A DNA stretch of 64,000 nt, taken from NCBI GenBank assembly GCA_024704765.1, contig JAKMXF010000336.1, positions 214,207 through 278,206 of the forward strand. The letters are read 5' to 3'. Under the pieces are notes generated by a model. The model was not told the DNA's origin and searched no databases. It saw nothing but the letters and a program-made list of their open reading frames with translations. How positions within the stretch are numbered: the stretch's first letter is position 1; each line of letters begins with the position of its first letter. Positions 991 to 64,000 of the stretch are shown one piece after another. This DNA is from Oopsacas minuta (lineage: Eukaryota; Animalia; Porifera). The position numbers and the translations under genes were made by a program.

Positions 991-1457
991 AATTAATATG
1001 TTACAAAATTAATTTATACTCCAATCCCCTTACCTATAATTATAACATTCAAACTCAAATATTTGTATTTTGAGTGCTAACCTTTGTTGCAATCCATTTA
1101 ACTCTAGAGCAAATTTTAGCTCAGCAACAAGCAAGAGCTTAGATTATTCCATTTGCTATGACTGACCAGTTCATGCAATCTGTGTTTTCCCATATTGCAT
1201 TGGCCAATGGAACTCTATCCCAAATAATATTAAGAGTTCCAATGCCCTTGACGTATTTTTGTGTAAACTCTGAGCTAATCTGTCTACATCAACATTCATC
1301 CAGTCACGCATGAACTTTTTAAGACTATTTTAGCAATATCTTATAGTTTTCTGAATGTGGGAATGATATTAAATACCAAATGAATAATATATACTTTACA
1401 ATATATATACTCATCATAGTATGTATAAAGCCATCTAGCGAAGTTGATGAGGAAATA

Positions 1458-1636
1458 TGCTGTAGGAGCCCAGATTATACACCCTGGTGTATCTCTCTTG
1501 GACAGATTATACCGTATATAATATGAGCTACACCACTTCATACTCAGGGAATAATTTGACCTAGGGTAGAATACCCTGAGGTATATTCTAGTCTAGGACA
1601 GATTATACCCGAGTATAATCTTGTCTGTTACACTGG
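1458..1636. mobile_element. ~180-bp foldback MITE, copy 1 (3' of LRR-EGF gene 1)
   Basis: Family ends (C)GGTGTAGCAGCCCAGATTATAC ... GTATAATCTTGGCTGTTACACCGG, degenerate in this copy; internal CAGATTATAC repeats; same position in all four units; a fragment also at about 9370-9412. Confidence 0.65.
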
Positions 1637-1856
1637 TACTGGAGTTATTACAAAGATAACACTAAACTAGAGAACACAACTAATATAATTCGGATATACA
1701 AAAAGAATCTCTGACTAAATATGTATACAGAGCTTAGAGTTGGTAAGAATCTAGTATACATTAATGGGGATGCCTAAATATACACACTATGAAGTTAACC
1801 TATAGTATAATCCCTGAGATAGATAATCAAAAGTAAAGTCAATGGTGAACTTGATA

Positions 1857-4800
1857 TCAGTTTATCTGGTATCTCACAGCTTCATCCTGCACACTTCCAG
1901 GATAAACTTCTGCAATAAAGTTTGGATCTTTCTTTTCGATTAGTTCAGATTCTATAGCAGTTGTTTTCTTCAATTCATCAGGCTGTACTGATCCGTGCAT
2001 GTAGTTATAGATTTCATTACTATATCCAGCAGTGGGGATTTTATGGTTGTTCGTGTCTTTTGCTTTGAGTATTCTGCGCATTTTGTTGTTCTTTCTAACA
2101 AAATACAAGAATAAAACGATAAACATGAATATTAGGAAAACATTGGACACTAAAGAGATAATCATGAGAATTACTGTTGGTTGGTACCATTCAAATTGGT
2201 TTTGAGTTGACATGGCTTGTTGCGTAAATGAGGATGTCGGATCTGAAGTTTGATGTGTAGTATTTCCTAGTGTATCAACATTTGGGCAAGAATGATTATA
2301 GATCCTGATGTTGAACCCTCCTTGACAAATGAAACGATTTTCATGATAACTGCCATCTACAACGTCACATTGTATGTTGCTTTCACAATGAGTTTCATTG
2401 ATCAGCTGATGACCATACTCACAATAACATTCAAAAGAACCTATGGTATTTCGACATCCAAACTCACATCCTCCATTCGCTTCTTGACACTCATTGACAT
2501 CATCACAATCATATCTATTTGCTGCTAGCTTGTATCCTTCATCACATAAACAAAGATACGAACCTTCTGTGTTCTCGCAGGTATGCTCACAATTTGTTTT
2601 GTGATTACATTCATCGAAGTCTAGACATTCACCTGAATTGTGCAGTGAATAACCAATAGGACAATTTGTTGGCGGTTCAGTTGGTTCTGAGGGTGATGTT
2701 GGGTCAGGGAAACTATGACAATTCAGATTTGTGATTGTGAGATTGAATCCTCCTTGACAAATGAAAATATTTTCTTGATATCCACTACCATCTATCACGT
2801 CACATTGTATATTTCTTTCACAATGAGTTTCATTGATCAGCTGATGACCATGCTCACAATAACATTCAAATGAACCTATGAAATTTCTACAACCAAACTC
2901 ACAACCTCCATTCCATTCATAACACTCATTTACATCTTCACAATCATATCCATTTTGAGAAACTGTGTATCCTTCATTACATGTGCAGTAGAATGAACCT
3001 ACTGTGTTCTCACAGGCATACTCACAATTCGTTTCCTCATCGCATTCATCAAAATCTTTACATTCACCTGAATTGTGCAGTGAATAACCAATAGGACAGT
3101 TTGTTGGCGATTCAGTTGATTCTGTTGTTGAGGGTGATGTTGGGTCTGGGAAGCTATGGCAAGTCAGATTTGTGATTGTGAGATTGAATCCTCCATGACA
3201 AACGAAGCGATATTCTTCATCACCGCTACTATCTACCACGTCACATTGTATGTTGCTTTCACAATGAGTTTTGTTGATCAGCTGATGACCATCCTGACAA
3301 TAACACAGATATGAACCGATTATATTTTGACATCCAAACTCACATCCTCCATTCCCTTCCTGGCACTCGTTAATATCATCACAAGCATATCCATTAGCAG
3401 CTAAGGTGTATCCTTCATCACATACACAACGATATGAACCTTCTGTGTTCTCACAGGCGTATGCACAATCAGTTGCCTCGTTACACTCATCAAAATCTTT
3501 GCATTCACCAGAGTTGTGCAGTGAATAACCTATTGGGCAAAAGGTTGGTGGTATTGTTGACTGTGCTGTTGAAGTTGTTGACGTTGTAGTTGTAGTGCTT
3601 TGACACGTGAAGTTTGTAATTGTCAGATTGAACCCTCCTTGACAAGTGAAGTGGTTTACTTGATAACTACTACTCTCGACCACGTCACATTGAATGTCGC
3701 TCTCACAATGAGTTTGATTAATCAGCTGATGTCCGTACTCACAATAACACAGATATGAACCTATGGTATTTCTACAACCAAACTCACATCCTCCATTCCA
3801 TTCCTGGCACTCATTAGCATCTTCACAATCATATCCATTAATAGCTAGTTTGTATCCTTCTTCACATATGCAATTATATGAACCTTCTGTGTTCTGACAA
3901 GCATATGAACAATTAGTTACTTCAGTGCACTCATTGAAATCTTTGCATTCACCTGAATTATGCAATGAATAACCAATAGGACAACTAGTTGGTTGTTCTG
4001 TTGAAGGTGTTGTTGGTTCAGTGATGCTTTGACAAGTCAGATTTGTGATAGTTAAGTTGAACCCTCCTTGACAAGTGAAGCGGTTTTCTTGATAACCACT
4101 ACTATCGACCACGTCACATTGAATATCGCTCTCACAATGAGTTTCGTTATACAATCGGTGTCCTTGCTCACAGTAACATTGATATGAACCTATGGTATTC
4201 CCACAACCAAACTCACATCCTCCATTTCCTATCTTACACTCATTCACATCATCACAAACATATCCATTTGCAGCTAGCTTGTATCCTTCATCACACACAC
4301 AATGGTATGAACCTTCTGTATTCTCACAGACATGCTCGCATTCAGTTACTACATCGCATTCATCTTCATCTACACATTCTCCTGAACTATCTTGTTGATA
4401 ACCTACAGGACAACTACAAAGGTAACCATCTTGTGTATTATGACATACTTCATTACTGGGACAGGTTATGGACTTGTCAAAGCATTGATAAGATTCTGTT
4501 TGTGAGCAATTGGTATACAACAGTGGATCAGTAATAGACTTTTGGAAGAAAACGTTTGGTTCAGAACAATATCCATTACTTGTATATACCCCATATTGCG
4601 ATACAATTGACGTCCATTGTAATCTACAGTCGCAGATGAACGGGTCATTTAAATATATATTTATGCTTGGTGATTTCATTTGCTGGAATACATATGAGTC
4701 TAGAGTATGATACTCATTGAACAGTAAATATACATCTCTTAGAGATCTTGTATGTATCAGTGCTTCAATAGGGAATCCTGGATTCTCATCTAATCTCAGT

Positions 4801-5600
4801 TCTGTCAGTTCAGTTAAACCTTCGAATACATTATTTGATATAATCTTTATTCCATTATTTTGAAGATAGAGTCTTGACAGACTTGAGAGTTCACTGAATG
4901 TACCATCCTCAATAATACTTAATTTATTGTTTTCAAAGCTCAAAAGTGTTAACGAGTTCAAACCATCCAATGCTCCTTTAGTTATGCTACTGAAATCCGA
5001 GTTGTAGAAACTTAGGTGAACCAAGTTTGATAATCCTCTAACGATTGTGTTATCAAATGTACGCGTGGACGAACCTACTATTCTAATGTCGAGATAAGTT
5101 AGAAATTGTAGATTTGTGAAATATGGTGATTCTTCTGAGATACAATTACCAATGTAGATAGATTTTAGACCAGTGAAATAATTGAAAAAGTTCCCAGACT
5201 CGAGTTGGATATGATAGGCATTATCTATAACTATCCTCGTTAATCCAGTATTCTGACTTGAGGTAGTTAAACGGATATTATCTTTATCTATACCATTGTA
5301 AATGTACAACGTTTGGATATGTGAGGCTATTTCTATATCGACGATTAGATTCCCGTATACTGTTGATGTGTAGTCTTTGTAGACATATATTGTAAAAAAT
5401 GCTGTGCTCTGAACGCTACAGTAGCTTAACAAACCCTTGATAACCTGAGTTTCATTATTAGTGATGTAGCAATTGAGGTAGGAACTATAAAAATCACAAT
5501 AACCTGCTTCATTAGAGCAACTGGGAGCTTCAACCACTCCATAATAGCACAAATATGTCACCAAACCTAACAACAGAGAGATATTTCCGAACTTCCCCAT
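1857..5600 (-). CDS. Intronless type-I membrane receptor, paralog 1 (1247 aa): signal peptide, LRRs, LRRCT, EGF, 5 cbEGF-pair modules, TM, Tyr-containing tail
   Basis: Single ORF; hydrophobic N-terminus; 24-aa LxxLxLxxN repeats; DPFICDCRLQW LRRCT; D-x-D/N-E-C...NTxGSYxC calcium-binding EGF consensus; Thr/Pro linkers; TM VILMIISLVSNVFLIFMFIVLFLYF. Confidence 0.93.
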   Translation of the reverse strand: MGKFGNISLLLGLVTYLCYYGVVEAPSCSNEAGYCDFYSSYLNCYITNNETQVIKGLLSYCSVQSTAFFTIYVYKDYTSTVYGNLIVDIEIASHIQTLYIYNGIDKDNIRLTTSSQNTGLTRIVIDNAYHIQLESGNFFNYFTGLKSIYIGNCISEESPYFTNLQFLTYLDIRIVGSSTRTFDNTIVRGLSNLVHLSFYNSDFSSITKGALDGLNSLTLLSFENNKLSIIEDGTFSELSSLSRLYLQNNGIKIISNNVFEGLTELTELRLDENPGFPIEALIHTRSLRDVYLLFNEYHTLDSYVFQQMKSPSINIYLNDPFICDCRLQWTSIVSQYGVYTSNGYCSEPNVFFQKSITDPLLYTNCSQTESYQCFDKSITCPSNEVCHNTQDGYLCSCPVGYQQDSSGECVDEDECDVVTECEHVCENTEGSYHCVCDEGYKLAANGYVCDDVNECKIGNGGCEFGCGNTIGSYQCYCEQGHRLYNETHCESDIQCDVVDSSGYQENRFTCQGGFNLTITNLTCQSITEPTTPSTEQPTSCPIGYSLHNSGECKDFNECTEVTNCSYACQNTEGSYNCICEEGYKLAINGYDCEDANECQEWNGGCEFGCRNTIGSYLCYCEYGHQLINQTHCESDIQCDVVESSSYQVNHFTCQGGFNLTITNFTCQSTTTTTSTTSTAQSTIPPTFCPIGYSLHNSGECKDFDECNEATDCAYACENTEGSYRCVCDEGYTLAANGYACDDINECQEGNGGCEFGCQNIIGSYLCYCQDGHQLINKTHCESNIQCDVVDSSGDEEYRFVCHGGFNLTITNLTCHSFPDPTSPSTTESTESPTNCPIGYSLHNSGECKDFDECDEETNCEYACENTVGSFYCTCNEGYTVSQNGYDCEDVNECYEWNGGCEFGCRNFIGSFECYCEHGHQLINETHCERNIQCDVIDGSGYQENIFICQGGFNLTITNLNCHSFPDPTSPSEPTEPPTNCPIGYSLHNSGECLDFDECNHKTNCEHTCENTEGSYLCLCDEGYKLAANRYDCDDVNECQEANGGCEFGCRNTIGSFECYCEYGHQLINETHCESNIQCDVVDGSYHENRFICQGGFNIRIYNHSCPNVDTLGNTTHQTSDPTSSFTQQAMSTQNQFEWYQPTVILMIISLVSNVFLIFMFIVLFLYFVRKNNKMRRILKAKDTNNHKIPTAGYSNEIYNYMHGSVQPDELKKTTAIESELIEKKDPNFIAEVYPGSVQDEAVRYQIN

Positions 5601-5719
5601 GACGAATACTGATCAAATGAAATTACCTGTTGTTCAGCAAATTTGAGCAATGAGTCGGAAAAGTAATAATGAATTGAATATTTGATAACAAACTGACATT
5701 TATACTCATTCCCGGAGCT

Positions 5720-5731
5720 GATATCGATATC
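5720..5731. promoter_or_regulatory. 12-bp palindrome GATATCGATATC (contains DRE-type TATCGATA) in the putative bidirectional promoter
   Basis: Identical in all four units (5720, 45700, 51500, 62355), about 120-135 bp upstream of the receptor ATG. A TATAAAT lies on the minus strand just downstream in the receptor direction. Confidence 0.5.
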
Positions 5732-6039
5732 TTGTTATTGGCTGGCATATATGGATTGTAGATGATGGAACATATCTATTTCTAGTGTAATTATATATCA
5801 TATACGTATATCTATACTATTAAAACTCAATTCATCTGTGTATATGTCTAGAATTGTTAGAAGAGATTGGAAGACTCCCAGGGCTGATTTTTGGCATACT
5901 GGAGTATTGTGGGCATGGCTTGGACTAGCTCGAGGATTGAACGAAAGTTCACACCTATGACGAAATTATGATATTATCATATATAATCGAGTGTGGATTT
6001 CGCAAATATATGTATTATGCATATACTTCCAAAACAAAT

Positions 6040-6925
6040 CAATCAATAAATGTAAACATCATTACAATCCTTCATGTTTCTCCACCATTCTGTATTGGTG
6101 CTGTTAAACAGGTTATCCTAGCATTTGGGTTCCAGGTAGTACTCTTACAAATCAGACTGCTTCTTGTAATCGGAGTTTAGCAAATTTGACCAAAGTTATA
6201 CTTGCAGTAATTGCATGTCATGTATGCATGCGGGCTCCGAGGGAATGAAATTTCCATCTTATGCACACAGCATTCTCATAGTTATAGGATTCCTATCACA
6301 GTATTTCCTATTGCAATCTGATAGGAAAATACTAAGTATTCTCCTACCCATTCCATACTTGCCAACCTGAGTGAAGGAAATTTTGTGACAGAAATATGAA
6401 TTTCGTGGGACATCGTGAGATGCAGCATTTGCATTAGACTGGACTACAAAAAACGGGACAATTATGTGAAATTCTAATTTTAGAATATTTCAGATGTAAT
6501 GATGCTTTCGGTAAACAGCCCTCAGGTAAATTGTCTTGTCTGTACAAAGAATATGAGTAAACCCTATCTCTTCTGTTGGTATTGTCTTGGAGAATGGAAA
6601 ATTTCCCCAACTGAATACAAAAACTGTGGGAATTCAAACTGCAAGAAAGCTAAGATTATGCAGCTATAGTCTGCACTAATGATTAATTTCAAAGATAAAA
6701 TGGCAAAACAGTCAAAGTTCCTAGAATATGATCCTGTCCTGACTGACAACTATAGTTGAACATAACGGTGGTTGCGACGAGATGACATGCGATTACTGCA
6801 AGTATAAATTTCTGAAAAATTGTTATATTTGCTTAACTCAGACTGAAAGAGGCAGTCCAATTTGTAAGAGTACTACATGGAACACAAATGTTACGATAAC
6901 TTGTTTACCACCACCAATACACACC
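6040..6925 (+). pseudogene. RBR (IBR + RING2/Rcat) E3 ubiquitin ligase pseudogene, copy 1
   Basis: Manual translation: VNCLVCTKNMSKPYLFCWYCLGEWK...NCGNSNC (IBR-like), then across frameshifts and stops VKVPRI*SCPD..VEHNGGCDEMTCDYCKYKF..CYICL (RING2 consensus). MITE fragment inserted at about 6353-6470. Start boundary approximate. Confidence 0.78.
6353..6470 (-). mobile_element. MITE end fragment inside the RBR pseudogene (present in all four copies)
   Basis: CATACTTGCCAACCTGAGTGAAGG...TTAGACTGGACTACAAAAA is the reverse complement of the right part of the element at 8538-8755. Confidence 0.75.
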
Positions 6926-7217
6926 AACGTATGGTATTCATTCTTCGGGTTATTTGTTAAGATTCAATTGGGCTTAAAATGTACTGAATTATTTCCTTCT
7001 ATCCATTGTTTTAGACTTTTGTCCAGTAATGTATTCTAGTTACTTACTACTTCTAAGCTATGTACGCTCACACGCTATGAATTATATACAAACTGATGTA
7101 CCGAATAATGGACTGTAGCCATATACATTTGTAGAAAGCCTAAAACGTAACCACAAATAATGACATAATTAAAGGCGCTAACTTATAATACTTTCGCCGT
7201 AACCCTGAAATAAATGC

Positions 7218-7246: not shown

Positions 7247-7431
7247 CTACATCGTATAAGAATATGAGCTAGCTATAATATCGTATTACAATTACGCTAT
7301 AAATAGATAAATTCCACCAACCAACTCAAAGATATCATATTCAAACACGCGTTATACTCTAACATATACTATACTTTATGTATATTTTACCACATATAAT
7401 CCCACCTATAAAGTGCTCTGCCACCACATTC

Positions 7432-7590
7432 CTCAAATTTGCTGAATATTAGGTAAGTGAATTTGTGAATATTTAATCAGTATTTATTCTGAGGAAAAAT
7501 CGGCAAGTTATGCCTGTTGCTATGTTTTGTGACATGTTTGTATTATTATGTCGTGGCATGGTAGAGGTGGTGGATTGCAGCAATTTACTG
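7432..7590 (+). pseudogene. Relic 5' leader and signal peptide of a plus-strand LRR-family paralog
   Basis: CTCAAATTTGCTGAA leader matches the receptor 5' leader; translation GKLCLLLCFVTCLYYYVV[frameshift]VEVVDCSN vs receptor GNICLLLGLVTYLYYYAVVEAVDCSN. Confidence 0.72.
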
Positions 7591-45100: not shown

Positions 45101-45564
45101 GAAATACAATAACCCAAGTAGATATATTTTAGACCTGTGAAGTAATTGAAAAAGTTTTTAGCCTCGAGCTGGATATGATAGCTACTACTAACAGATATCC
45201 TCGTTAATCCAGTATTTTGGCTAGATGTAGTTAGACGGATATTATCTCGATCTTCGTAATTGTAAATGCGTAAATATTGGATATTTGAGGCTAATTCTAT
45301 ATCAATGATTAGGTTCCCGTATACTGTTGATACGTAGTTTTTGTAGACATATATTGTAGAAAATACTGTACTCTGACCGCTACAGTAGCTTAACAAACTC
45401 TTGATGACCTGAGTTTCATTATTAGTGATGTAGCACTGTAGATAGCTACTACCATAATTACAATACCCTGCTCCATTAGAGCAATCGACAGCTTCAACCA
45501 CTCCATAATAATACAAATATGTCACCAAACCTAACAACAGGCATATATTACCGAACTTCCCCAT
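42193..45564 (-). CDS. LRR-cbEGF type-I receptor, paralog 2 (1123 aa): one extra 24-aa LRR, 4 EGF modules
   Basis: Intact ORF; tandem NNKLSIIEDGTFNELSSL / NNKLGIIEDGTFNELSSL LRR duplication; same architecture as 1857-5600. Confidence 0.93.
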   Translation of the reverse strand: MGKFGNICLLLGLVTYLYYYGVVEAVDCSNGAGYCNYGSSYLQCYITNNETQVIKSLLSYCSGQSTVFSTIYVYKNYVSTVYGNLIIDIELASNIQYLRIYNYEDRDNIRLTTSSQNTGLTRISVSSSYHIQLEAKNFFNYFTGLKYIYLGYCISKETPSFTNLQYLSSLSVRIVGASTRTFDNTIVRELSNLVYLNFYNSDFSSITKGALDGLNSLTYLSFANNKLSIIEDGTFNELSSLLSLYLQNNKLGIIEDGTFNELSSLLQLYLQNNGIKIISNNVFEGLTELTYLNLDENPGFPIEALINTRSLRYVLLQYNEYHTLDPYVFQQMKSPSSIYLYLSDPFICDCRLQWTSMVSQYGVYISNGYCSEPNVFFQKSITDPLLYANCSQTESYQCFDKLITCPSNQVCHNTQDSYLCGCPIGYLQHSSGECVDEDECDVVTECEHTCENTEGSYHCVCDEGYKLAANGYVCDDVNECKVGNGGCEFGCGNTIGSYQCYCEQGHQLYNETHCESDIQCDVVDSSGYQENRFTCQGGFNLTITNLTCHSITEPTTPSTEQPTSCPIGYSLHNSGECKDFDECDEVTNCTYACQNTEGSYSCICEEGYKLAINGYDCEEANECQEWNGGCEFGCRNTIGSYLCYCEYGHQLINQTHCESDIQCDVVDSSGHQENRFTCQGGFNLTITNLTCQSITKQTTPSTEQPTSCPIGYSLHNSGECKDFNECTEVTNCSYACQNTEGSYNCICEEGYKLAINGYDCEDANECQEWNGGCEFGCRNTIGSYLCYCEYGHQLINQTHCESDIQCDVIDSSNNEEYQFICDGGFNLTITNFTCQSTAITMPKTSTAQSTIPPTFCPIGYSLHNSGECKDFDECNEATDCAYACENTEGSYRCACDEGYTVAANGYACDDINECQEGNGGCEFGCQNIIGSYLCYCQDGHQLINKTHCESNIQCDVVDSSYHENRFICQGGFNITIQNFSCPNVDTLGNTTHQTSDPTSSFTPRAMSTQNQFEWYQPTVILMVISLVSNVFLIFMFIALFLYFVRKVNKLQGIPKAKDTNNHRIPTAGYSNEIYNSIHGSAQPDELKKTTAIESELIEKKDPNLIAEVYPGSVQDEAVRYQIN

Positions 45565-46019: not shown

Positions 46020-46900
46020 CAATAAATGTAAACATCATTACAATCTTTCATGTTTCTCCACCATTCTGTATTGGTACTGTTAAACAGGTTATCCTAGCAT
46101 TTGGGTTCCAGGTAGTACTCTTACAAATCAGACTGCTTCTTGTATTCGGAGTTTAGCAAATTTGACCAAAGTTATACTTGCAGTAATTGCATGTCATGTA
46201 TGCATGCGGGCTCCGTGGGAATGAAATTTCCATCTTATGCACACAGCATTCTCATAGTTATAGGATTCCTATCACAGTATTTCCTATTGCAAACTGATAG
46301 GAAAATACTAAGTATTCTCCTACCCATTCCATACTTGCCAACCTGAGTGAAGGAAATTTTGTGACAGAAATATGTATTTTGTGGGACATCGTGAGATGCA
46401 GCATTTGCATTAGACTGGACTACAAAAAACGGGACAATTATGTGAAATTCTAATTTTAGAATATTTCAGATGTAATGATGCTTTCGGTAAACAACCCTCA
46501 GGTAAATTGTCTTATCTGTACAAAGAATATGAGTAAACCCTATCTCTTCTGTTGGTATTGTCTCGGAGAGGGGAAAAGTTCCCTAACTGAATACAAAACT
46601 GTGGGAATTAAAACTGCAAGAAAGCTAAGATTATACAGCTAGAGTCTGCACCAAAGATTGATTTCAGAGATAATACAGGCAAAACAGTCAAAGTTCCTAG
46701 AATAATAGCCTGTCCTAAATGCACAACTGTAGTTGAACATAATGGCGGTTGCAACGAGATGACATGCGATCACTGCAAGTATAAATTTCTGGAAATTTGT
46801 TCTATTTGCTTAACTCCGACTAAAGAAGCAGTCTAATTTGTAAGAGTAATACCTGGAGCACAAATGCTACGATAACCTGTTTCCCACCACCAATACACAT
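46020..46900 (+). pseudogene. RBR E3 ligase pseudogene, copy 2
   Basis: FCWYC and VEHNGGCNEMTCDHCKYKF..CSICL motifs with stops and frameshifts; same MITE fragment. Confidence 0.75.
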
Positions 46901-47440
46901 CAACATATGATATTTATTCTTCGATTTATTTGTTAAGGTTCAACTAGGCTTAAAATCTGTATTCTTTCCATTTATACATTGTTTTGGACTTTTGGCCAGT
47001 AATGTATTCTAGTTACTTACTACTTCTAAGCTATGTACGCTCACACGCTATGAATTATATACAAACTAATGTACCGAATAATGGAAAATAGCCATATATG
47101 TTTGTAGAAAGCCTAAAACGTAACCACAAATAACAATATAATCAAAGGCGCTAACTTATAATACTTTCGCCGTAACCCAGTTTGAGAACCACTGATCTAC
47201 ATCGTATAAGAATACATGATGAGCTAGCTATAATATCGTATACATTTACGCTATAAATAGATAAATTCCACCAACCAACTCAAAGATATCATATTCAAAC
47301 ACGTGTTATACTCTAACATATACTATACTTTATGTATTTTCTAACATATACTCCCATCTATAAAGTGCTCTGCCAAGACATTCCTCAAATTTGCTGAATA
47401 TTAGGTAAGTGAATTTGTGAATATTCAATCAGTATTTATT

Positions 47441-48821
47441 CTGAGGACAAATCGGTAGAGGCGGTGGATTGCAGCAATTTACTGTTATTATAATAGTTTG
47501 TATCTTGAGTGTTTCCTTTACAATAATGATACGGGATTGATTAGAATTCTGTTAAAGAATTGCAGTATCCTGAACACTGCGATAGACTACATGATGTGTA
47601 TAAACACTATTATCCACCAACATATGGCCATTTAATCATTGATATTGACTTACCTACAAGTATTCATACAATATTTGGTCAGAACGTTGGGTTAAATTGG
47701 TTAACCAGTTTTGCACATGTTGTATTCGAATCGCAAAACTTTTTCAACAACTTTCAAGTTCTCCAGCATATATACATGAGCAATCTTATTCTAAAATAGA
47801 CACAATAGTTCACGAATCTAGAATATCTGAACATTTTCGAAAGTTTACATGATTTGACATCATTAGACATATCTGAGAGTCCAGAGTTTTCTATTATAAC
47901 ACTGCTACATGCAAGATCTCTCGATATTCTATACTTACAATAGTTATAGAACGCTTCACTCGTGTATATTCCAACAAATGAATTCATTAAGATATCTGTG
48001 TCCGGATAATCCATTTACTATGGAGTAATTCGATCCATCAATTTATCACAAATCCATAACTATATTCAAATTGCTTCATTCATGCAAATAATACGAATGA
48101 TGAGAGTTTGCCATCTTTAGCTTCTATTGATATTGATATAGATCGTAAATTTGAACTCAGCGAACTATCAGGTATCATGATGGGGAAGCTTATAAGAGGC
48201 ATATTCGTTATACTTCTAATTATTCTAGGTTGTGTGTGTATAATATCTGGTATTATTCCAAGTTCTCAATATTTGTCAGTAAATATACTAATCAATACAA
48301 GTATGTTCAGTACTTGTAATAGTTTCGAATTTGATACAGGTAGCATTACTAATAGGAGAAGATGTATAAATTTGTATCTGTTGGCAGTTAGTTTGTTTGG
48401 AATTGTTTCAACAGTTATTGCATGTTTAAGAGGTAGTGAAAAGAAATATGTGAATATTATTGTAGCCTTGTTGAGATTCTTGGTGATGTGTTAGATGGTA
48501 TTTTTCGCAATATTTATCATTGGGAGATAATTGTAAAGTAATGAGAAAATTGATACAGATTTCGTGACAAAATTTGAATTCAATAAAGGTATGCTCGTCT
48601 TGTCCACGTTTTGCACTACTTTTTGCTTACTAATATTTATTCCAGACTTCACCCATGACATTGCTAGAAAGTCGATAATTGCTCCAGTGATGATTATATC
48701 ATTCATAACAGTACTGATATAGATTATCATATACACTGTCGTATTAGCATTTTCTTATGGTAATGATATACATCAAAAACAGTGTAATACAGCTCCAACC
48801 TTACACTGTTGGGAATCATAG
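47441..48821 (+). pseudogene. Diverged LRR paralog relic continuing in frame into a multi-pass membrane region
   Basis: Manual translation: VEAVDCSN..CYYNSLYLECFLYNNDTGLIRILLKNCS / VYKHYYPPTYGHLIIDIDLP / HVVFESQNFFNNF / NIFESLHDLTSLDISESPEFSIITLLHARSLDILYLQ / IFQQMNSLRYLCPDNPF / FITNP*LYSNC, each matching the receptor N-terminal region in order. It then continues in the same frame into about 5 hydrophobic segments (48190-48760) with four further in-frame stops. Confidence 0.78.
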
Positions 48822-49242
48822 TATTGCAGTAAAGGAATATCACATTTGGGTACTTTTCTGCCCGAACCAGTTCTGGTACCTATAACTAGTTCGCCCATTG
48901 TAGAACGATCTTTCAGGATCAGTATTGGCGGCAACTAAGCTACACTGAGATATTTACGTATACCGTATGACTTCTAAGCCTAATAACTGAATGAACCTCA
49001 GGTAAGCGACCTTCAAATCTCCGGCCTAGTTATGACCAGGGTGGATCAATTAGTGCCGGTCAGTTAAGGCTGTCACCACTGGTGCCGTAAGAGTTGTGGC
49101 TTGTTTCAGAAGGTTTTTGCAATATATTAAAATTTCTGAATGCTGGAATGATTTGAAATACCGAATGAATTTTCTATTCTTTACAATGCATATACCGATT
49201 TTAGTATTTATTAAGCCAGCTACCGAAGTTGATGAGGAAACA

Positions 49243-49639: not shown

Positions 49640-51382
49640 TCAGTTTATCTGCACACTTCCAGGATAAACTTCTGAAATAAGGTTGGAATCTTTCTTTTCG
49701 ATTAGTTCAGATTCTTTAACAGTTGTTTTCTTCAATTCATCAGGTTGTACTGATCCGTGCATGCAGTTATAGATTTTATTACTATATCCAGCAGTGGGGA
49801 TTCTATGGTTTTTCGGGTCTTTTGCTTTGAGAATCCCTTGTAGTTTGTTAACCTTTATAACAAAATACAAGAATAATGCTATAAACATGAATATTAGGAA
49901 AACATTAGACACTAAAGAGATAATCATGAGAATTACTGTTAGTTGTCCTTGCTCACAGTAACACAGATATGAACCTATTGTATTGCCACAACCAAACTCA
50001 CATCCTCCATTTCCTATCATACACTCATTGACATCATCACAAACATATCCATTTGCAGCTAGCTTGTATCCTTCTTCGCACACACAATGGTATGAACCTT
50101 CTGTGTTGACACAGGTATGCTCGCATTCAGTTTCCTCATCACATTCATCGAAGTCTCTACATTCTCCTGAAACATATAGTAGATAACCTACAGGACAACC
50201 ACAATAGTAATCATCTTCTGCATTATGACATACTTGATTACTAGGACAGGTTGTGGACTTGTCAAAGCATTGATATGATTCTGTTTGTGAGCAATTTGTA
50301 TACAGCTGTGGATTACTAATATCTTTGTTGAGGAAATTGTTTGGTTCAGAACAAATACCATTGTATATATTTATCCCATATTGAGATACAATTGACGTCC
50401 ATTGTAATCTACAATCGCAGACGAAAGGGTCGTTTAAATATATGCTGGTTAGTGATTTCATTTGCTGGAATACATATGGGTCTAGAGTATGATAATCATT
50501 GTACTGTAAGTATACAGATTCAAGAGATCTTGTGTGTATCAGTGCTTCAATAGGGAATCCTGGATTCTCATCTAATCTCAGTTCTGTCAGTTCAGTTAAA
50601 CCTTCGAAAACATTATTTGATATACTCTTTATTCCATTATTTTGAAGATAGAGTTCTAACAGACTTGAGAGTTCACTGAATGTACCATCCTCAATACTAC
50701 TTAATTTATTGTTTTCAAAGCTCAGAAGAGTTAACGAGTTCAAACCATCCAATGCTCCTTTAGTTATGTTGCTGATACCCGAGTTTGGGAAACTTAGCAA
50801 AGTCAGGTTAGATAATCCTCTAACGATTGTATTATCAAATGTACGCGTGGACGAACCGATTATTCTAACATAGAGATAAAGTAGATATTGTAGATTTGTG
50901 AAAGATGGCGTTTCTTTTGAAATAACATAACCCATCAAGATAGATTTTAGACCTGTGAAGTAATTGAAAAAGTTTTTAGACTCAAGCTGGATATGATCGT
51001 TACCAACATATATGTGCAATAAGCCAGTATTTTGACTAGATGTAGTTAAACGGATATTGTCTTGATCTTCGTCATTCTTAAGGTACAATCGTTGGATATT
51101 TGAGGCTAATTCTATATCAATGATTAGATTCCCGTATACTGTTGATACGTAGTATTTGTAGACATATATTGATACAAATGCTGTGTTCTGACCGCTACAG
51201 TAGCTTAACAAACTCCTGATGACCTGAGTTTCACTATTGGTGATGTAGCAACTGAGGGAGGAACTAGTATAATCACAATACCCTGCTCCATTGGAGCAAT
51301 CGACAGCTTCAACCACTGCATAATAATACAAATAAGTCACCAAACCTAACAGCAGACATATATTTCCGAACTTCCCCATCAC
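49640..51382 (-). CDS. LRR-cbEGF receptor, paralog 3 (580 aa), stalk removed by an in-frame deletion
   Basis: Intact ORF; the last EGF ends CYCEQGQ and joins directly to LTVILMIISL (TM); tail GSVQIN lacks DEAVRYQ. Confidence 0.88.
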   Translation of the reverse strand: MMGKFGNICLLLGLVTYLYYYAVVEAVDCSNGAGYCDYTSSSLSCYITNSETQVIRSLLSYCSGQNTAFVSIYVYKYYVSTVYGNLIIDIELASNIQRLYLKNDEDQDNIRLTTSSQNTGLLHIYVGNDHIQLESKNFFNYFTGLKSILMGYVISKETPSFTNLQYLLYLYVRIIGSSTRTFDNTIVRGLSNLTLLSFPNSGISNITKGALDGLNSLTLLSFENNKLSSIEDGTFSELSSLLELYLQNNGIKSISNNVFEGLTELTELRLDENPGFPIEALIHTRSLESVYLQYNDYHTLDPYVFQQMKSLTSIYLNDPFVCDCRLQWTSIVSQYGINIYNGICSEPNNFLNKDISNPQLYTNCSQTESYQCFDKSTTCPSNQVCHNAEDDYYCGCPVGYLLYVSGECRDFDECDEETECEHTCVNTEGSYHCVCEEGYKLAANGYVCDDVNECMIGNGGCEFGCGNTIGSYLCYCEQGQLTVILMIISLVSNVFLIFMFIALFLYFVIKVNKLQGILKAKDPKNHRIPTAGYSNKIYNCMHGSVQPDELKKTTVKESELIEKKDSNLISEVYPGSVQIN

Positions 51383-51809: not shown

Positions 51810-52700
51810 ACCAAATCAATGAATAAATGTAATCATCATTATAATCCTACATGTTTCTCTCCCATTCTGTATTGGTGCTGTTAAACAGGTTATCGTAGCA
51901 TTTTGACTTACAGGTAGTACTCTTACAAATCAGACTGCCTCTTGTATTCGGAGTTAAGCAAATTTGACAAAATTTATGTCTGCAGTAATTGCATGTCATG
52001 TATGCTTGCGGGCTCCGTGGGAATGAAATTTCCATCACATGCACACAGCATTCTCATAGTTATAGGATTGCTATCACAGTATTTCCTATTGCAATCTGAT
52101 AGGAAAATACTATGTATTCCCCTACACATTCCATACTTGCCAACTTGAGTGAAGGGAAAATTTGGGACAGAAATTATGAATTTAGTGGGACATCGTGAAA
52201 TGCAGCATTTGCATTAGACTACAGAAATCGGGACAATTAATTGAAATCAAAATTTTGAATATTTCAGATATAATGATGTTTTCGGTAAACAGCCCTCAGG
52301 TGAATTATCTTGTCTGTACATAGAATATGATTAAGGCCTATCTCTTCCATCGGGATTGTCTTGGAGAATGAAAAAGTTCCCCAACTGAGTACAAAAACTG
52401 TGGGAATTGAACTGCCAGAAAGCTAAGATTATGTAGCTAGAGTCTGCACCAATAATTGATTTCAAAGATAAAAAAGGCAAAACAGTCAAAGTTCCTAGAA
52501 TAAGAGCTTGTCCTGACTGCCCAACTATACTTGGACATAATGGTGGTTGCAACGAGATGACATGCAATTACTGCAAGTACAATGTTTTTCAATCTGGGAT
52601 ATTTGCTTAACTCCGACTAAAAGAGGCAGTCTAATTTGTAAGAGTACTACCTGGAACACAAATGCTACGATAACCTGTTTAACACCACCAATACCCACCA
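51810..52700 (+). pseudogene. RBR E3 ligase pseudogene, copy 3
   Basis: KTVKVPRIRACPDCPTILGHNGGCNEMTCNYCKY read in one frame at about 52480-52580 (best-preserved RING2); disrupted elsewhere. Confidence 0.8.
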
Positions 52701-53204
52701 ACATATGATATTCATTCTTCTGTCTATTTGTTAAGGTTCAACTAGGCTTAAAATCTATATTATTTCCATTTATACATTGTTTTGTACTTTTGTCCAGTAA
52801 TGTATTCTAGTTACTTACTACTTCTAAGCTATGTACGCTCACACGCTATGAATTTTATACAAACTAATGTACTCAATAATGGAATATAGCCATATATGTT
52901 TGTAGAAAGCCTAAAACGTAGCCACAAATAATAACATAATCAAGGACGCTAACTTATAATCGTATAGCCGTACCCCTGAAACAACTGCTGGAGTAACCCG
53001 GTTTGAGAACCACTGATTTACATCATAGAAGAATATATGAGCTAGCTATAATATCGTAGACAATTACGCTATGAATAGATAAATTCCACCAACCAGCTCA
53101 AAGATAGCATATTCAAACACGTGTTATACTCTAACATATACTATACTTTATGTATTTTCTAACATATACTCCATCTATAAAGTACTCTGCCAGCACATAA
53201 CTCA

Positions 53205-57646: not shown

Positions 57647-57826
57647 CAGGGTGTAGCAGCCCAGATTATACCCTGTTGTATTCTCTCTTGGACCGATTAT
57701 ACCGTATATATTATGAGCTAGAGCACTTCATACTCAGGGGATAATTTGACCTAGGGTGGAATACCCTGAGGTATATTCTGGGATAGGATAAATTCTACCT
57801 GAGCAGAATCTTGGCTGTTACACCGG
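57647..57826. mobile_element. Foldback MITE, copy 4
   Basis: Homologous to 1458-1636. Confidence 0.65.
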
Positions 57827-58046
57827 TACTGGAGTTATTACAAAGATTACAATAATTCGAGCACACAACTAATTTAATTCGCATATACAAAAAGAATCTC
57901 TGAGTAAATATGTAAACAGAGCTTATAGTTAGTAAGTATCTAGTATACATTACTGGGGATGCCTAAATATACACACTATGAGGGTTAACCTATAGTTAAA
58001 TCCCTGAGATAGATAATCAAAAGTAAAGTCAATGGTGAACTTGATA

Positions 58047-61000
58047 TCAGTTTATCTGGTATCTCACAGCTTCGTCCTGCACACTTCCAGGATAAACTTC
58101 TGCAATAAGGTTTGGATCTTTCTTTTCGATTAGTTCAGATTCTTTAGTAATTGTTTTCTTCAATTCATCAGGCTGTGCTGATCCGTGAATGCTGTTATAG
58201 ATTTCATTACTATATCCAACTCTGGGGATTCTATGGTTGTTCGTGTCTTTTGCTTTGAGTATTCTGTGCATTTTGTTGTTCTTTCTAACAAAATACAAGA
58301 ATAATGCTATAAACATGAATATTAGGAAAACATTGGACACTAAAGAGATAATCATGAGAATTACTGTTGGTTGGTACCATTCAAATTGGTTTTGAGTTGA
58401 CATGACTTGTTGCGTAAATGAGGATGTCGGATCTGAAGTTTGATGTGTAGTATTTCCTAGTATATCAACATTGGGGAAAGAATGATTATAGATCGTGATG
58501 TTGAACCCTCCTTGACAAATGAATCGATTTTCATGATAACTGCTATCTACAACGTCACATTGTATGTTGCTTTCGCAATGAGTTTCATTGATCAACTGAT
58601 GACCATACTCACAATAACATTCAAAAGAACCTATGATATTTCTACAACCAAATTCACAACCTCCATTCGCTTCTTGACACTCATTGACATCATCACAATC
58701 ATATCCATTAGCTGCTAGCTTGTATCCTTCATCGCATACACAAAGATACGAACCTTCTGTGTTCTCACAGCTATGCTCACAATTCGTTTCCTCATCGCAT
58801 TCATCGAAATCTTTGCATTCACCTGAATTGTGTAGTGAATAACCAATAGGACAGTTTGTTGGCGATTCAGTTGATTCTGAGTGTGATGTTGGGTCAGGAA
58901 AGCTATGACAAGTCAGATTTGTGATTATGAGACTGAATCCTCCTTGACAAATGAAACGATTTTCTTGATATCCACTACCATCTACCACGTCACATTGTAT
59001 GTTGCTCTCACAGTGAGTTTCATTTATCAGCTGATGTCCATACTCACAATAACATTCAAATGAACCTATGGTATTTCTACAACCAAATTCACAACCTCCA
59101 TTCCATTCCTTACACTCATTTGTGTCTTCACAATCATAACCATTAGTAGACACTGTGTATCCTTCATTACATAAGCAATAGTACGAACCTTCTGAGTTCT
59201 CACAGGAATGCTCACAATTCGTTTCCTCATCGCATTCATCCACATCTTTGCATTCACCTGAATTGTGTAGTGAATAACCAATAGGACAGTTTGTTGGCGA
59301 TTCAGTTGATTCTGTTGTTGAGGGTGATGTTGGGTTAGGGAAGCCATGGCAAGTCAGATTTGTGATTGTAAGATTGAATCCTCCATGACAAACGAAGCGA
59401 TATTCTTCATCACCGCTTCTATCTACCACGTCACATTGTATGTTGCTTTCACAGTGAGTTTCATTTATCAGCTGATGTCCATACTCACAATAACATTCAA
59501 ATGAACCTATGGTATTTCTACAACCAAATTCACAACCTCCATTCCATTCCTTACACTCATTTGTGTCTTCACAATCATAACCATTAGTAGACACTGTGTA
59601 TCCTTCATTACATAAGCAATAGTACGAACCTTCTGAGTTCTCACAGGAATGCTCACAATTCGTTTCCTCATCGCATTCATCCACATCTTTGCATTCACCT
59701 GAATTGTGTAGTGAATAACCAATAGGACAGTTTGTTGGCGATTCAGTTGATTCTGTTGTTGAGGGTGATGTTGGGTTAGGGAAGCCATGGCAAGTCAGAT
59801 TTGTGATTGTAAGATTGAATCCTCCATGACAAACGAAGCGATATTCTTCATCACCGCTTCTATCTACCACGTCACATTGTATGTTGCTTTCACAATGAGT
59901 TTTGTTGATCAGCTGATGACCATCCTGACAATAACACAGATATGAACCGATTATATTTTGACATCCAAACTCACATCCTCCATTCCCTTCCTGGCACTCG
60001 TTGATATCATCACAAGCATATCCATTAGCAGCTAAGGTGTATCCTTCATCACATACACAAAGATATGAACCTTCTGTGTTCTCACAGGCATATGCACAAT
60101 CAGTTGCCTCGTTACACTCATCAAAGTCTTTGCATTCACCAGAGTTGTGCAGTGAATAACCTATCGGACAAAATGTTGGTGGTATTGTTGACTGTGCTGT
60201 TGAAGTTGTTGACGTTGTTATTGTAGTGCTTTGACACGTGAAGTTTGTAATTGTGAGATTGAACCCACCATCACAAACGAATCGATATTCTTCATAGTTG
60301 CTACTATCAGCCACGTCACATTTTATGCTCCTCTCACAATGGGTTTTATTAATCAGCTGAGATCCGTACTCACAGTAACACAGATATGAACCTATGGTAT
60401 TTCTACAGCCAAACTCACATCCTCCATTCCATTCATGGCACTCATTAGCATCTTCACAATCATATCCATTAATAGCTAGTTTGTATCCTTCTTCACATAT
60501 GCAATTATATGAACCTTCTGTGTTCTGACAAGCATATGAACAATTAGTTACTTCAGTGCACTCATTGAAATCTTTGCATTCACCTGAATTATGCAATGAA
60601 TAACCAATGGGACAACTAGTTGGTTGTTCTGTTGAAGGTATTGTTGGTTCTGTGATGCTATGACAAGTCAGATTTGTGATAGTAAGGTTGAACCCTCCTT
60701 GACAAGTGAAGCGGTTTTCTTGATAACCACTACTATCGACCACGTCACATTGAATATCGCTCTCACAATGAGTTTCGTTATACAATCGGTGTCCTTGCTC
60801 ACAGTAACATTGATATGAACCTATGGTATTACCACAACCAAACTCACATCCTCCATTTCCTATCTTACACTCATTCACATCATCACAAACATATCCATTT
60901 GCAGCTAGCTTGTATCCTTCATCACATACACAATGGTATGAACCTTGTGTGTTGACACAGGTATGCTCGCATTCAGTTTCCTCATCACATTCATCGAAAT

Positions 61001-62234
61001 CTCTACATTCTCCTGAATTGTGCAGTGAATATCCTTTTGGACAACTACAAAGGTAGCCATTTTGTGTATTATGGCATACTTCATTACTGGGACAGGTTAT
61101 AGACTTGTCAAAGCATTGATAAGATTCTGTTTGTGTACAATTTGTATACAACAGTGGATTAGTAATAGAATTTTGGAAGAAAATGCTTGGTTCAGAACAA
61201 TATCCATTTCTTATATATACCCCATATTGCGAGACAATTGACGTCCATTGTAATCTACAGTCGCAGATGAACGGGTCATTTACATATATATATATGCTAG
61301 TTTGTGATTTCAATTGCTGGAATACATATGGGTCTAGAGTATGATAATCATTGTATCGTAAGTATACATACCTTAGAGATCTTGTATTTATCAGTGCTTC
61401 AATAGGGAATCCTGGATTCTCTTCTAAATTCAGGTATGTCAGTTCAGTTAAACCTTCGAAAACATTATTTGATATGATCTTTATTCCATTATTTTGAAGA
61501 TGGAGTTGTAACATGCTTGAGAGTTCATTGAATGTACCATCCTCAATAATGCTTAATTTATTGTTTTGGAAGCTCAGATATGTTAACGAGTTCAAACCAT
61601 CCAATGCTCCTTTAGTTATGCTAGTGAAATCTGAGTTATAGAACCTTAGGTAAACCAAGTTTGATAATCCTCTAGCGATTGTATTATCAAATGTACGCGT
61701 GGACGAACCGATTATTCTAGCGTAGAGATAAGTTAGATATTGTAGATTTGTAAAAGATGGTGTTTCTTTTGTAATACAATAACCCGTGTAGATAGATTTT
61801 AGACCAGTGAAGTAATTGAAAAAGTTACCAGACTCGAGCTGGAAATGATAGTTACTGCTAAGATATATTCTCGTTAATCCAGTATTTTGACTAGATGTAG
61901 TTAAACGGATATTGTCTTGATCTCTGGAATTGTAAATGTATAGATATTGGATATTTGAGGCTAATTCTATATCAATGATTAGATTCCCGTATACTGTTGA
62001 TACGTAGTATTTGTACACATATATTGTTACAAATGCTGTGCTCTGACCACTACAGTAGCTTATCAAACTCTTGGCAACCTGAGTTTCATTATTGGTGATG
62101 TAGCACCGTAGATAGTTACTATAATAATCACAATACCCTGCTCCATTAGAGCAATCGACAGCTTCAACCACTGCATAATAATACAAATATGTCACCAAAC
62201 CTAACAGCAAACATATATTACCGAACTTCCCCAT
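58047..62234 (-). CDS. LRR-cbEGF type-I receptor, paralog 4 (1395 aa): 6 EGF modules
   Basis: Intact ORF, same architecture; modules 4 and 5 identical. Confidence 0.93.
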   Translation of the reverse strand: MGKFGNICLLLGLVTYLYYYAVVEAVDCSNGAGYCDYYSNYLRCYITNNETQVAKSLISYCSGQSTAFVTIYVYKYYVSTVYGNLIIDIELASNIQYLYIYNSRDQDNIRLTTSSQNTGLTRIYLSSNYHFQLESGNFFNYFTGLKSIYTGYCITKETPSFTNLQYLTYLYARIIGSSTRTFDNTIARGLSNLVYLRFYNSDFTSITKGALDGLNSLTYLSFQNNKLSIIEDGTFNELSSMLQLHLQNNGIKIISNNVFEGLTELTYLNLEENPGFPIEALINTRSLRYVYLRYNDYHTLDPYVFQQLKSQTSIYIYVNDPFICDCRLQWTSIVSQYGVYIRNGYCSEPSIFFQNSITNPLLYTNCTQTESYQCFDKSITCPSNEVCHNTQNGYLCSCPKGYSLHNSGECRDFDECDEETECEHTCVNTQGSYHCVCDEGYKLAANGYVCDDVNECKIGNGGCEFGCGNTIGSYQCYCEQGHRLYNETHCESDIQCDVVDSSGYQENRFTCQGGFNLTITNLTCHSITEPTIPSTEQPTSCPIGYSLHNSGECKDFNECTEVTNCSYACQNTEGSYNCICEEGYKLAINGYDCEDANECHEWNGGCEFGCRNTIGSYLCYCEYGSQLINKTHCERSIKCDVADSSNYEEYRFVCDGGFNLTITNFTCQSTTITTSTTSTAQSTIPPTFCPIGYSLHNSGECKDFDECNEATDCAYACENTEGSYLCVCDEGYTLAANGYACDDINECQEGNGGCEFGCQNIIGSYLCYCQDGHQLINKTHCESNIQCDVVDRSGDEEYRFVCHGGFNLTITNLTCHGFPNPTSPSTTESTESPTNCPIGYSLHNSGECKDVDECDEETNCEHSCENSEGSYYCLCNEGYTVSTNGYDCEDTNECKEWNGGCEFGCRNTIGSFECYCEYGHQLINETHCESNIQCDVVDRSGDEEYRFVCHGGFNLTITNLTCHGFPNPTSPSTTESTESPTNCPIGYSLHNSGECKDVDECDEETNCEHSCENSEGSYYCLCNEGYTVSTNGYDCEDTNECKEWNGGCEFGCRNTIGSFECYCEYGHQLINETHCESNIQCDVVDGSGYQENRFICQGGFSLIITNLTCHSFPDPTSHSESTESPTNCPIGYSLHNSGECKDFDECDEETNCEHSCENTEGSYLCVCDEGYKLAANGYDCDDVNECQEANGGCEFGCRNIIGSFECYCEYGHQLINETHCESNIQCDVVDSSYHENRFICQGGFNITIYNHSFPNVDILGNTTHQTSDPTSSFTQQVMSTQNQFEWYQPTVILMIISLVSNVFLIFMFIALFLYFVRKNNKMHRILKAKDTNNHRIPRVGYSNEIYNSIHGSAQPDELKKTITKESELIEKKDPNLIAEVYPGSVQDEAVRYQIN
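59008..59894. repeat. Apparently perfect 441-bp tandem duplication (one 147-aa module) in paralog 4
   Basis: 59008-59453 matches 59449-59894 with no mismatch seen; identical ORF-track peptides at 59066 and 59507 are offset by 441. Confidence 0.92.
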
Positions 62235-62679
62235 GACGAATACTGATCGAATGAAACTACCTATTGTTCAGCAAATTTGAGCAATGAGTAGGGAAAAGTA
62301 ATGATGAATTGAATATTTGATAAGAAACAAACATTTATACTCATAACCGGAGCTGATATCGATATCTTGTTATTGGCTGGCTTATTAGGATTTTAGATGA
62401 CGGAATATATCTATTTCTAGTGTAATTTTATATCATATATATCTATACTATTAAAACTCAATTAATCTGTGTGTATGTCCAGAATTGCTTGAAGTAATTG
62501 GAAAACTTCCAGTGCTGATTTTTGGCATACAGTAGGATTTTGGGTATGGCTTGGCCTAGTTCGAGGATTGGACGAAAGTTAACACCTATAACAAAATTAT
62601 GACATCGTTATATATTTATGATTGTGGATTTCGCAAAATTTATGTATTATGCATATATTACCAAAACAATATCAATGAA

Positions 62680-63535
62680 TAAATGTAAGCATCATTCCAA
62701 TCCTTCATGTTTCTATGCCATTCTGTATTGGTGCTGTTAAACAGGTTATCGTAGCATTATGGCTTACAGGTAGTACACTTACAAATCAGACCGCCTCTTG
62801 TATTCGGAGTTAAGCAAATTTGACAAAATTTATACTAGCAGTAATCGTATGTCATGTATGCATGCAGGGTCCGTGGGAATGAAATTCCCATCTCATGCAC
62901 ACAGCATTCTCATTGTGATGGGATTCCTATCACAGGATTTCCTATAGGAATTCCCATTGAAATCTGATAGGAAAATACTAAGTATTCCCCTACCCATTCC
63001 ATAGTTGCCATCCTGAGTGAAGGAAAAATTGGGGACAGAAAATATGAATTTGTGGGACATCGTGAGATGCAGCATTTGCATTAGACTGGACTACAAAAAT
63101 CGGGAGAATTTTAGAATGTTTCAGATGTAATGATGCTTTCGGTAAACAGCCCTCAGGTAAATTGTCTTATCTGTACAAAGAATATGAATGAACCCTATCA
63201 CTTCTGTTGGTATTGTCGGAGAAGGGGAAAGTTCCCCAACTGTATACAAAACTGTGGGAATTAACACTGCAAGAATGCTAAGATTATGCAGTAGAGTCTG
63301 CAATCAATAATTACCATCAAAGATAAGAATGGCAAAACAGTCAAAGTTCCTAGAATATGAGCCTGTCCTGACTCACAACTATACTTGAACATAATGGCGG
63401 TTGTAACGAGATGGCATGCGATTACTGCAAGTATAAACTTTTTTACATTTGTTTTATTTGCTTTTCTCTGACTAAAAGAGGCAGTCTAATTTGTAAGAGT
63501 ACTACCTGGAACACAAATGCTAATACCTACCAACA
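62680..63535 (+). pseudogene. RBR E3 ligase pseudogene, copy 4
   Basis: VNCLICTKNMNEPYHFCWYC...NCGN*HC...KTVKVPRI*ACPD / EHNGGCNEMACDYCKY; same MITE fragment. Confidence 0.75.
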
Positions 63536-64000
63536 TATGATATTCATTCTTCTGTTTATTTTTTAAGGTTCAATTGGGCTTAAAATGTACTGAATTATTT
63601 CCTTTTATCCATTGTTTTGGACTTTTGTCCAGTAATGTATTCTAGTTACTTACTACTTCTAGGCTATGTACGCTCACACGCTATGAATTTTATACAAACT
63701 GATGTACCGAATAATGGAATATAGCCATATACGTTTGTAGAAAGCCTGAAACGTAACCACAAATAATAAAATAATCAAGGACGCTAACTTATAATAGTTT
63801 CGCCGTAACCCTGAAACAACTGCTGGTGTAACCCAGTTTGAGAACCACTGATCTACATCGTATAAGAATACATGATGAGCTAGCTATAATATCGTATATA
63901 ATTACGCTATAAATAGATAAATTCCACCAACCAACTCAAAGATATCATATTCAAACACGTGTTATACTCTAACATATACTATACTTTATGTATTTTCTAA

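Follow-up and report, generated by a model that had tools for sequence, protein, structure and literature searches.

RBR ligase relics beside a fourfold-repeated LRR-cbEGF receptor gene in a glass sponge: probable passengers of segmental duplication

Introduction

When a receptor gene and the sequence of a ubiquitin ligase are found side by side several times in the same cluster, do the two form a working unit, or has one of them simply been carried along whenever the other was duplicated? The question is raised by the final 64 kb of contig JAKMXF010000336.1 of the glass sponge Oopsacas minuta (assembly GCA_024704765.1), a stretch of 64,000 nucleotides which is called here the window and in which positions are given as the record position minus 214206, base 64000 being the last base of the contig. 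In this window a receptor built of leucine-rich repeats (LRRs) and calcium-binding EGF (cbEGF) modules occurs four times, each time with sequence of an RBR-type E3 ligase beside it. The initial annotation had described the arrangement as a three-gene cassette amplified four times, composed of the LRR-EGF receptor, an RBR ligase placed head-to-head with it and an LRR-multipass receptor. The evidence discussed below indicates that the locus is quite probably a segmental duplication of the receptor gene accompanied by passenger pseudogenes, and not a working three-gene system; this reading is carried by the anatomy of the units, by a breakpoint common to the ligase copies, by the neutral evolution of these relics, and by the collinearity of the units with an intact ligase-receptor pair.

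Tandem or segmental arrays of lineage-specific LRR surface receptors are known from invertebrates, the expanded Toll-like and LRR-only families being examples; glass sponges are early-branching animals, and their recognition receptors are poorly known.

The four units and their receptors

Comparison of the window with itself resolves four units (unit 1, ~1327-7886; unit 2, ~41533-47455; unit 3, ~48942-53655; unit 4, ~57482-64000), each 5-6.5 kb long and 82-90% identical to one another across kilobases, which upholds the fourfold repeat originally described. Unit 4 is incomplete: the sequence does stop there, as had been noted, but the cause is the end of the contig and not the edge of the window only. 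The four units do not form a simple head-to-tail array, because an usherin-like gene (12396-37644, plus strand; 2226 aa, with Laminin_N, EGF_laminin, fn3 and LamG domains) lies between unit 1 and the other three. The repeat reaches further on the left side of units 2 and 4, as a block at 38820-41677 (plus strand) that is 94% identical to 53827-56665 and contains decayed copies of an orphan multipass open reading frame (ORF) described under the other features of the region.

Repeats and palindromes close to the end of a contig may be suspected of being mis-joins of the assembly, and it is true that the contig stops inside unit 4 and that the contigs built from public reads break at the repeat borders. 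Such an artefact is nonetheless extremely unlikely: with differences of 10-18% between them and indels private to each, the units are neither collapsed nor duplicated reads, and contigs of the public runs cover 5942-6453, 6625-7264 and 7292-7911, that is, they span the relic region of unit 1, at single-copy depth and with few differences, with the proviso that these runs come from one sample and may be the assembly's own source data. The runs, four in number, show even depth over coding and intergenic DNA and behave like genomic DNA of a single sample.

An LRR-EGF receptor on the minus strand of every unit, the first component of the proposed cassette, is indeed present, in the form of ORFs of 1247 aa in unit 1 (1857..5600; intact, intronless and a called gene in the assembly), 1123 aa in unit 2 (42193..45564; intact), 580 aa in unit 3 (49640..51382; annotated as 579 aa) and 1395 aa in unit 4 (58047..62234; intact); three long minus-strand ORFs are the exact products of called genes on the contig. 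The receptors consist of an LRR block, 1-6 large cbEGF modules and a tail of about 100 aa, and their translations are hydrophobic at the N-terminus and in one stretch close to the C-terminal end, which represent a putative signal peptide and a single transmembrane segment. In Pfam searches LRR_8, EGF_CA and cEGF are matched (with 10 EGF_CA stretches in unit 1), an LRR block and calcium-binding EGF domains being found together in all four; at E up to 0.01 the same searches yield no TIR domain, the cytoplasmic domain by which a Toll-like receptor is recognised, and no other known signalling domain was found.

Beyond glass-sponge-like data, the best matches (chaoptin-, Slit- and TLR-like proteins) reach 25-33% identity, and NCBI names the receptor proteins 'Fibrillin-2-like'. 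The family is lineage-specific, expanded and undescribed, no paper on it having been found, and its members would be cell-surface proteins of recognition or adhesion. It resembles the receptor arrays of other invertebrates in that intronless genes with LRR ectodomains lie in dense tandem arrays, with a variable number of modules and with pseudogene debris between them, but it departs from them in the lack of TIR and in the stalk of large cbEGF modules.

Between paralogs, which are 76-82% identical in the LRR head, the ratio of nonsynonymous to synonymous substitution rates (dN/dS) of the head is 0.41-0.64 at a dS of about 0.2; the receptor ORFs are therefore under some constraint. The receptor of unit 3, which is open and annotated and keeps its transmembrane segment and a shortened tail after the deletion of nearly all cbEGF modules, may be a pseudogene at an early stage or else a short, isoform-like paralog. 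The dN/dS of its tail is 0.73-0.80 against the other units and 0.60 against a 953-aa receptor that lies to the left of the window.

The ligase relics and their common breakpoint

Just left of the window a ubiquitin-like (Ubl) gene, an intact RBR gene and the 953-aa receptor gene are annotated in this order and in the same direction. The RBR gene (L001:18044-18880, on the receptor strand) is a single exon of 837 nt encoding 278 aa; it matches Pfam IBR_1 and IBR, and its RING2 matches the RING2 chains of ARIH1, ARIH2 and parkin in the PDB, that is, it possesses the IBR and RING2 of the Ariadne/parkin type, while for a RING1 there is no Pfam RING match, a Cys/His-rich stretch being visible at residues ~47-90. 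In a paralog (P0038) Ubl and RBR are found within one protein. The neighbour thus recalls the Ubl-RBR ligases of Parkin-like architecture with an Ariadne-type RING2, since its IBR and RING2 are preceded by a ubiquitin-like gene or exon; it is unlike them in that the proteins of its family are small (~278 aa, the Ubl not counted), lack RING0 and have multiplied to dozens of paralogs in glass-sponge-like data, and in that the four copies inside the window are fragments, codons 142-278, interrupted by stops and frameshifts.

These fragments were detected by tblastn of the window with the intact 278-aa protein as a probe, and lie on the plus strand. In unit 1 the relic occupies 6514..6961 (tblastn match 6514-6931), comprises IBR, RING2 and the 3' flank, and carries a stop and two frameshifts; in unit 2 it occupies 46490..46995 (match 46490-46907), with two frameshifts; in unit 3, 52288..52783 (match 52288-52705), with a stop and two frameshifts; in unit 4, 63145..63522 (match 63145-63521), with several indels, including a deletion of 23 nt. 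The RBR origin that had been assigned to the plus-strand sequence of every unit is therefore correct, but a whole gene it is not. IBR and RING2 are still recognisable at 61-81% amino acid identity; in no copy are they held in one open frame, at least two frameshifts being present in each and a stop in two of them as well, and the NCBI annotation calls no gene in any relic region.

In the DNA alignment all four relics diverge from the intact sequence at one and the same base, just before codon 142, and loose ends of the public reads at 6515 continue into intact RBR sequence, as expected at a common breakpoint. The four relics group as a single clade (89/87) when a maximum-likelihood tree is built, and this clade is nested within a young RBR subfamily that holds the intact neighbour. 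Their lesions are private to each copy, with the exception of one 1-nt deletion common to units 2 and 4, and the dN/dS between relics, computed in the intact frame, is 0.73-1.65, versus about 0.5 for the LRR heads of the receptors. Because of the shared breakpoint, the single clade, the private lesions and a dN/dS near 1, the ancestor of the four units is seen to have carried no more than a fragment of the ligase, which has drifted since. This runs against the earlier proposal that the ligase decayed after the amplification, which is equally at odds with the inverted layout described in the next section.

Two ways of rescuing a live gene were considered and rejected. No hidden upstream exon encoding RING1 or Ubl turned up in any unit when Ubl-RBR proteins and the N-terminal halves of eight paralogs served as tblastn probes, E being allowed to reach 5; and the changes of frame are not the introns of a multi-exon gene, as the intact paralog has a single exon, to which the relics can be aligned base by base, showing stops and indels of 1-2 nt, and nothing ahead of codon 142 is present.

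A further RBR copy lies to the left of the window (L009:19291-20010, window -15254 to -14538, plus strand); over codons 40-278, which it comprises, it shares 90% identity with the intact gene; its annotated product has 215 aa, it is oriented in the opposite direction, and no receptor follows it directly.

Palindromic structure of the units

The interval of 0.9 kb from the start of the receptor to the relic on the plus strand had been taken for a short divergent promoter, a description which does not survive inspection, since the interval is filled with ligase debris. In unit 1 it holds, on the minus strand and thus in receptor sense, a scrap with RBR codons 232-278 and the RBR 3' flank (5980..6221; detected by tblastn over codons 232-275, and matching L001 18737-19014 at 72-73% by blastn), whose counterparts in the other units, on the same strand, are at 45956-46197, 51772-51999 and 62627-62855; adjoining it is a homolog of the region that precedes the RBR exon (6220..6446, minus strand; 75-83% to L001 17703-17957 by blastn), with minus-strand counterparts at 46196-46422, 51998-52220 and 62854-63093. 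Read in receptor sense, every unit presents in order the L001 17703-17957 region, the sequence from codon 232 to the 3' flank (18737-19014) and the receptor promoter (20592-20897), all by blastn, the pre-exon region being joined straight to codon 232 and some 780 bp of the exon being gone. The plus arm runs from RBR codon 142 through the 3' flank and, about 500 nt further on, into a promoter and leader of receptor type. In units 1, 2 and 3 one arm aligns to the other with 70-83% identity, collinearly and in inverted orientation; unit 4 leaves the contig before the plus-arm leader.

Because both arms are collinear with the intact locus in which the RBR gene is followed by the 953-aa receptor, each unit is best read as an imperfect palindrome of two old co-directional RBR-then-receptor pairs joined at their ligase side. 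The head-to-head layout, which had been regarded as ancestral, would then be the product of an inverted duplication, as this collinearity and the inverted arms suggest. In the tree the four minus-arm scraps form a clade of their own (100/99), nested in the same young RBR subfamily as the relics, and those of units 1 and 2 are near-identical. A patch of 300 bp (5807-6106 versus 45783-46082) is 99% identical between these two units, the remainder being about 90% identical; patch and scraps together point to a recent, putative gene conversion in the region upstream of the receptor.

In every unit examined the inverted RING2 arms, about 140 nt long, are 79-83% identical and lie about 560 nt apart. 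Their presence in all these units, and the position of the relics at less than 1 kb from the receptor start, could be taken to mean that the relics have been kept as non-coding functional DNA, either as a promoter or enhancer of the receptor or as a source of antisense or hairpin RNA acting on intact RBR paralogs; yet the relics diverge at the pace of synonymous sites and with private indels, and the identity of the arms is too low for a good hairpin, so that a function of this kind is very unlikely. The relics are closer to the processed or duplicated pseudogene passengers of segmental duplications, which are truncated fragments of neighbouring genes copied together with a unit and neutral thereafter, and differ from them in that an older, palindromic order of ligase-receptor pairs is still recognisable in them.

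The claimed LRR-multipass gene

The third member of the cassette, an LRR-multipass receptor thought to survive over 1.4 kb between units 2 and 3, resolves into two unrelated pseudogene pieces lying side by side. That the leader and signal peptide of another LRR paralog occur in units 1-3 is correct, the copy of unit 2 bearing a 58-bp deletion. In unit 1 a receptor-type promoter and signal peptide (7427..7556, plus strand) are broken by a stop, and unit 3 has the counterpart at 53183-53352 (plus strand); in these two units the leader only is found, a stop standing at the expected start of the mature protein, and past the leader the two sequences change at an identical position. In the plus arm of unit 2 (47379..47986, plus strand) the leader is followed by the decayed LRR head of a diverged paralog (47471-47986), which is 35-50% identical to the receptor head, is distributed over several frames and is missing residues ~168-256.

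The membrane part of the claimed gene (48060..48863, plus strand) was searched against 1.84 billion representatives, and its matches are multipass proteins of 438-552 aa, aligned from residue 30-108 onward, which are devoid of an LRR head. It aligns at E ~1e-53 to residues ~73-342 of these transporter-like proteins (of a total of ~494), in one frame with four in-frame stops; some of the relatives match Pfam Aa_trans (PF01490), and the O. minuta paralog LOD99_8670 is named by UniRef as an amino acid transporter transmembrane domain protein. The piece is homologous to the Aa_trans proteins and not a functional, full-length member of them, from which it differs as an internal fragment with these stops and with no splice that would join it in frame to the LRR head. 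Neither does the region encode an LGR-like receptor, in which an LRR ectodomain and a complete multipass domain belong to one gene, since the LRR part is frameshifted and the membrane part is a transporter fragment. With the LRR-head relic directly adjoining this fragment, the ancestral tandem junction that had been perceived between units 2 and 3 is not a clean one either.

The LRR and transporter debris of unit 2 may be a copy of an older neighbourhood. As a separate observation, the intact transporter-like gene LOD99_8670 (P0180) lies 11 locus tags from another LRR-cbEGF cluster (LOD99_8681, P0082) on contig JAKMXF010000340.1, and in the ENA data P0177 and P0084, one from each family, are each reported on a contig of 645573 bp.

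Linkage of ligase and receptor at other loci

The association of the two families was surveyed at eight loci outside this cluster, a sample of the genome, taken from O. minuta and from ENA samples. The three receptor loci, with four receptors on O. minuta contig 340 (L010), one receptor on O. minuta contig 15 (L011) and at least six receptors within 13 kb in an ENA sample (L007), contain no RBR by tblastn. Four of the RBR loci contain no receptor: in O. minuta the ligase is found among NHL-repeat genes (L004) or with Ubl and E2 genes (L005), and in ENA samples it forms a pure RBR array (L008) or, as the closest ENA relative (66% identity), stands among housekeeping genes (L012). The remaining one, L006:1-20825 on O. 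minuta contig 277 (JAKMXF010000277.1), carries two consecutive Ubl/RBR/E2 (UQ_con) triplets by two zf-TRAF genes, and a 465-aa LRR-cbEGF protein is encoded there head-to-head with a Ubl-RBR gene; this protein is collinear with the receptors of the window and only 24% identical to them (E 2e-16). The pairing of ligase and E2 at this locus has more of the appearance of a real module than does the pairing in the window.

Adjacency is therefore found at none of the three other receptor loci and at one of the five other RBR loci, and in the homolog lists of the two families the present contig is the only apparent overlap. A conserved module, which would require the two families to be adjacent at loci independent of one another and also in a related genome, is not observed within the sampled loci, and a general linkage of receptor and ligase is not supported. 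Of the ancestral linked module, what stands is that, in this cluster, the ligase moved along with the receptor, as the unit flanks are collinear with the intact pair; what falls is the third member, the head-to-head layout and the generality. Adjacency is recurrent locally, occurs once more at a distance, and is no rule of either family. Expansions of LRR or RBR genes find no mention in the O. minuta genome paper, and a non-exhaustive keyword search of the literature returned nothing on RBR-receptor pairing in sponges.

A functional ancestral module, in which the RBR would regulate the adjacent LRR receptor or receptors by ubiquitination and would have been co-amplified with them as a working set, finds some favour in the intact Ubl-RBR placed directly upstream of the 953-aa receptor and co-directional with it, in the derivation of both arms of every unit from the same type of pair, in the distant LRR-cbEGF gene of contig 277 with its Ubl-RBR-E2 repeats and TRAF genes, and in the further RBR 15 kb left of the window. 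It is quite unlikely all the same: in four of the five pairs within reach the ligase is dead while the receptors are intact at a dN/dS of about 0.5, and the receptors therefore need no cis-linked ligase; receptor clusters without RBR (L010, L011, L007) and RBR loci without receptor (L004, L005, L008, L012) count against it; and its third member does not exist as a gene. Quite unlikely, too, is the narrower idea that the co-directional pair of Ubl-RBR and LRR-cbEGF gene is a real functional unit of glass sponges, a receptor provided with its own ligase; if it were true, the pair would belong to a wider toolkit of ubiquitin signalling, inclusive of the Ubl-RBR-E2 triplets and TRAF genes of contig 277, and the dead copies of the window would be turnover products of a birth-and-death process acting on the ligase-receptor pair.

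Proposed origin of the units

For the segmental duplication of a receptor gene with its passengers, the following order of events may be proposed from the comparison of sequences. The older building block would have been a co-directional pair, Ubl-RBR followed by receptor, of which one intact example remains left of the window. An old inverted duplication would have set two such pairs back to back, and deletions would then have taken the 5' parts of both ligase copies, giving rise to the imperfect palindrome: on the minus arm a receptor preceded by an RBR scrap (codons 232-278), on the plus arm RBR codons 142-278 followed by the head of a second receptor paralog. Unequal recombination would have multiplied the broken block to four copies, which would later have undergone gene conversion among themselves; selection would have retained the minus-strand receptor ORFs only, the rest being neutral passenger debris, and in unit 2 this debris would have come to abut the unrelated transporter fragment.

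Several points weigh against such a reconstruction. The order of events rests on identities, which gene conversion can distort; the public data in which the stretch was found are four DNA-like runs, no RNA-Seq run being listed; the survey covers eight other loci, a sample of the genome. Moreover, adjacency recurs, in the intact pair, in both arms of each unit, in the RBR 15 kb left of the window and at L006, and this exceeds what pure chance easily gives, so that a past or present functional tie may exist.

Other features of the region

The orphan multipass ORF, a family that the NCBI annotation leaves uncalled, is present as one intact copy (9619-10749, plus strand; 376 aa), as an inverted 5' fragment at 7881-8219 (minus strand; 81% identity) and as two damaged copies on the plus strand (38484-39628 and 53800-54639), one of which is frameshifted and the other cut at the N-terminus. 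The intact ORF has no Pfam match, and the leads from Atlas (THH1/TOM1/TOM3-like, GPR137-like) are weak, with a recognition value of 2046, below the benchmark of 2300. A kinship of the transporter-like fragment of unit 2 to these ORFs (9619-10749, 38484-39344 and 53800-54639) was considered and rejected, no similarity between them being found.

Within the span of the usherin-like gene, an ORF of 298 aa at 17419-18315 (plus strand) is mostly an in-frame 8-nt microsatellite and does not represent a gene. Left of the window, a called 209-aa gene (L009:14667-15826, window about -9911 to -11070) has in its first exon a weak Pfam match to DED (E 0.009), which is below the cut-off and was not used as evidence.

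Implications

The window offers a mapped case of birth-and-death evolution in an undescribed LRR-cbEGF family of a glass sponge, together with a clear record of neighbouring genes whose debris was dragged along by inverted and tandem duplication. It also provides a modest lead, in that a small Ubl-RBR family, which elsewhere is found with E2 and TRAF genes, lies repeatedly beside receptors in one cluster, hinting at a possible link between these receptors and ubiquitination.

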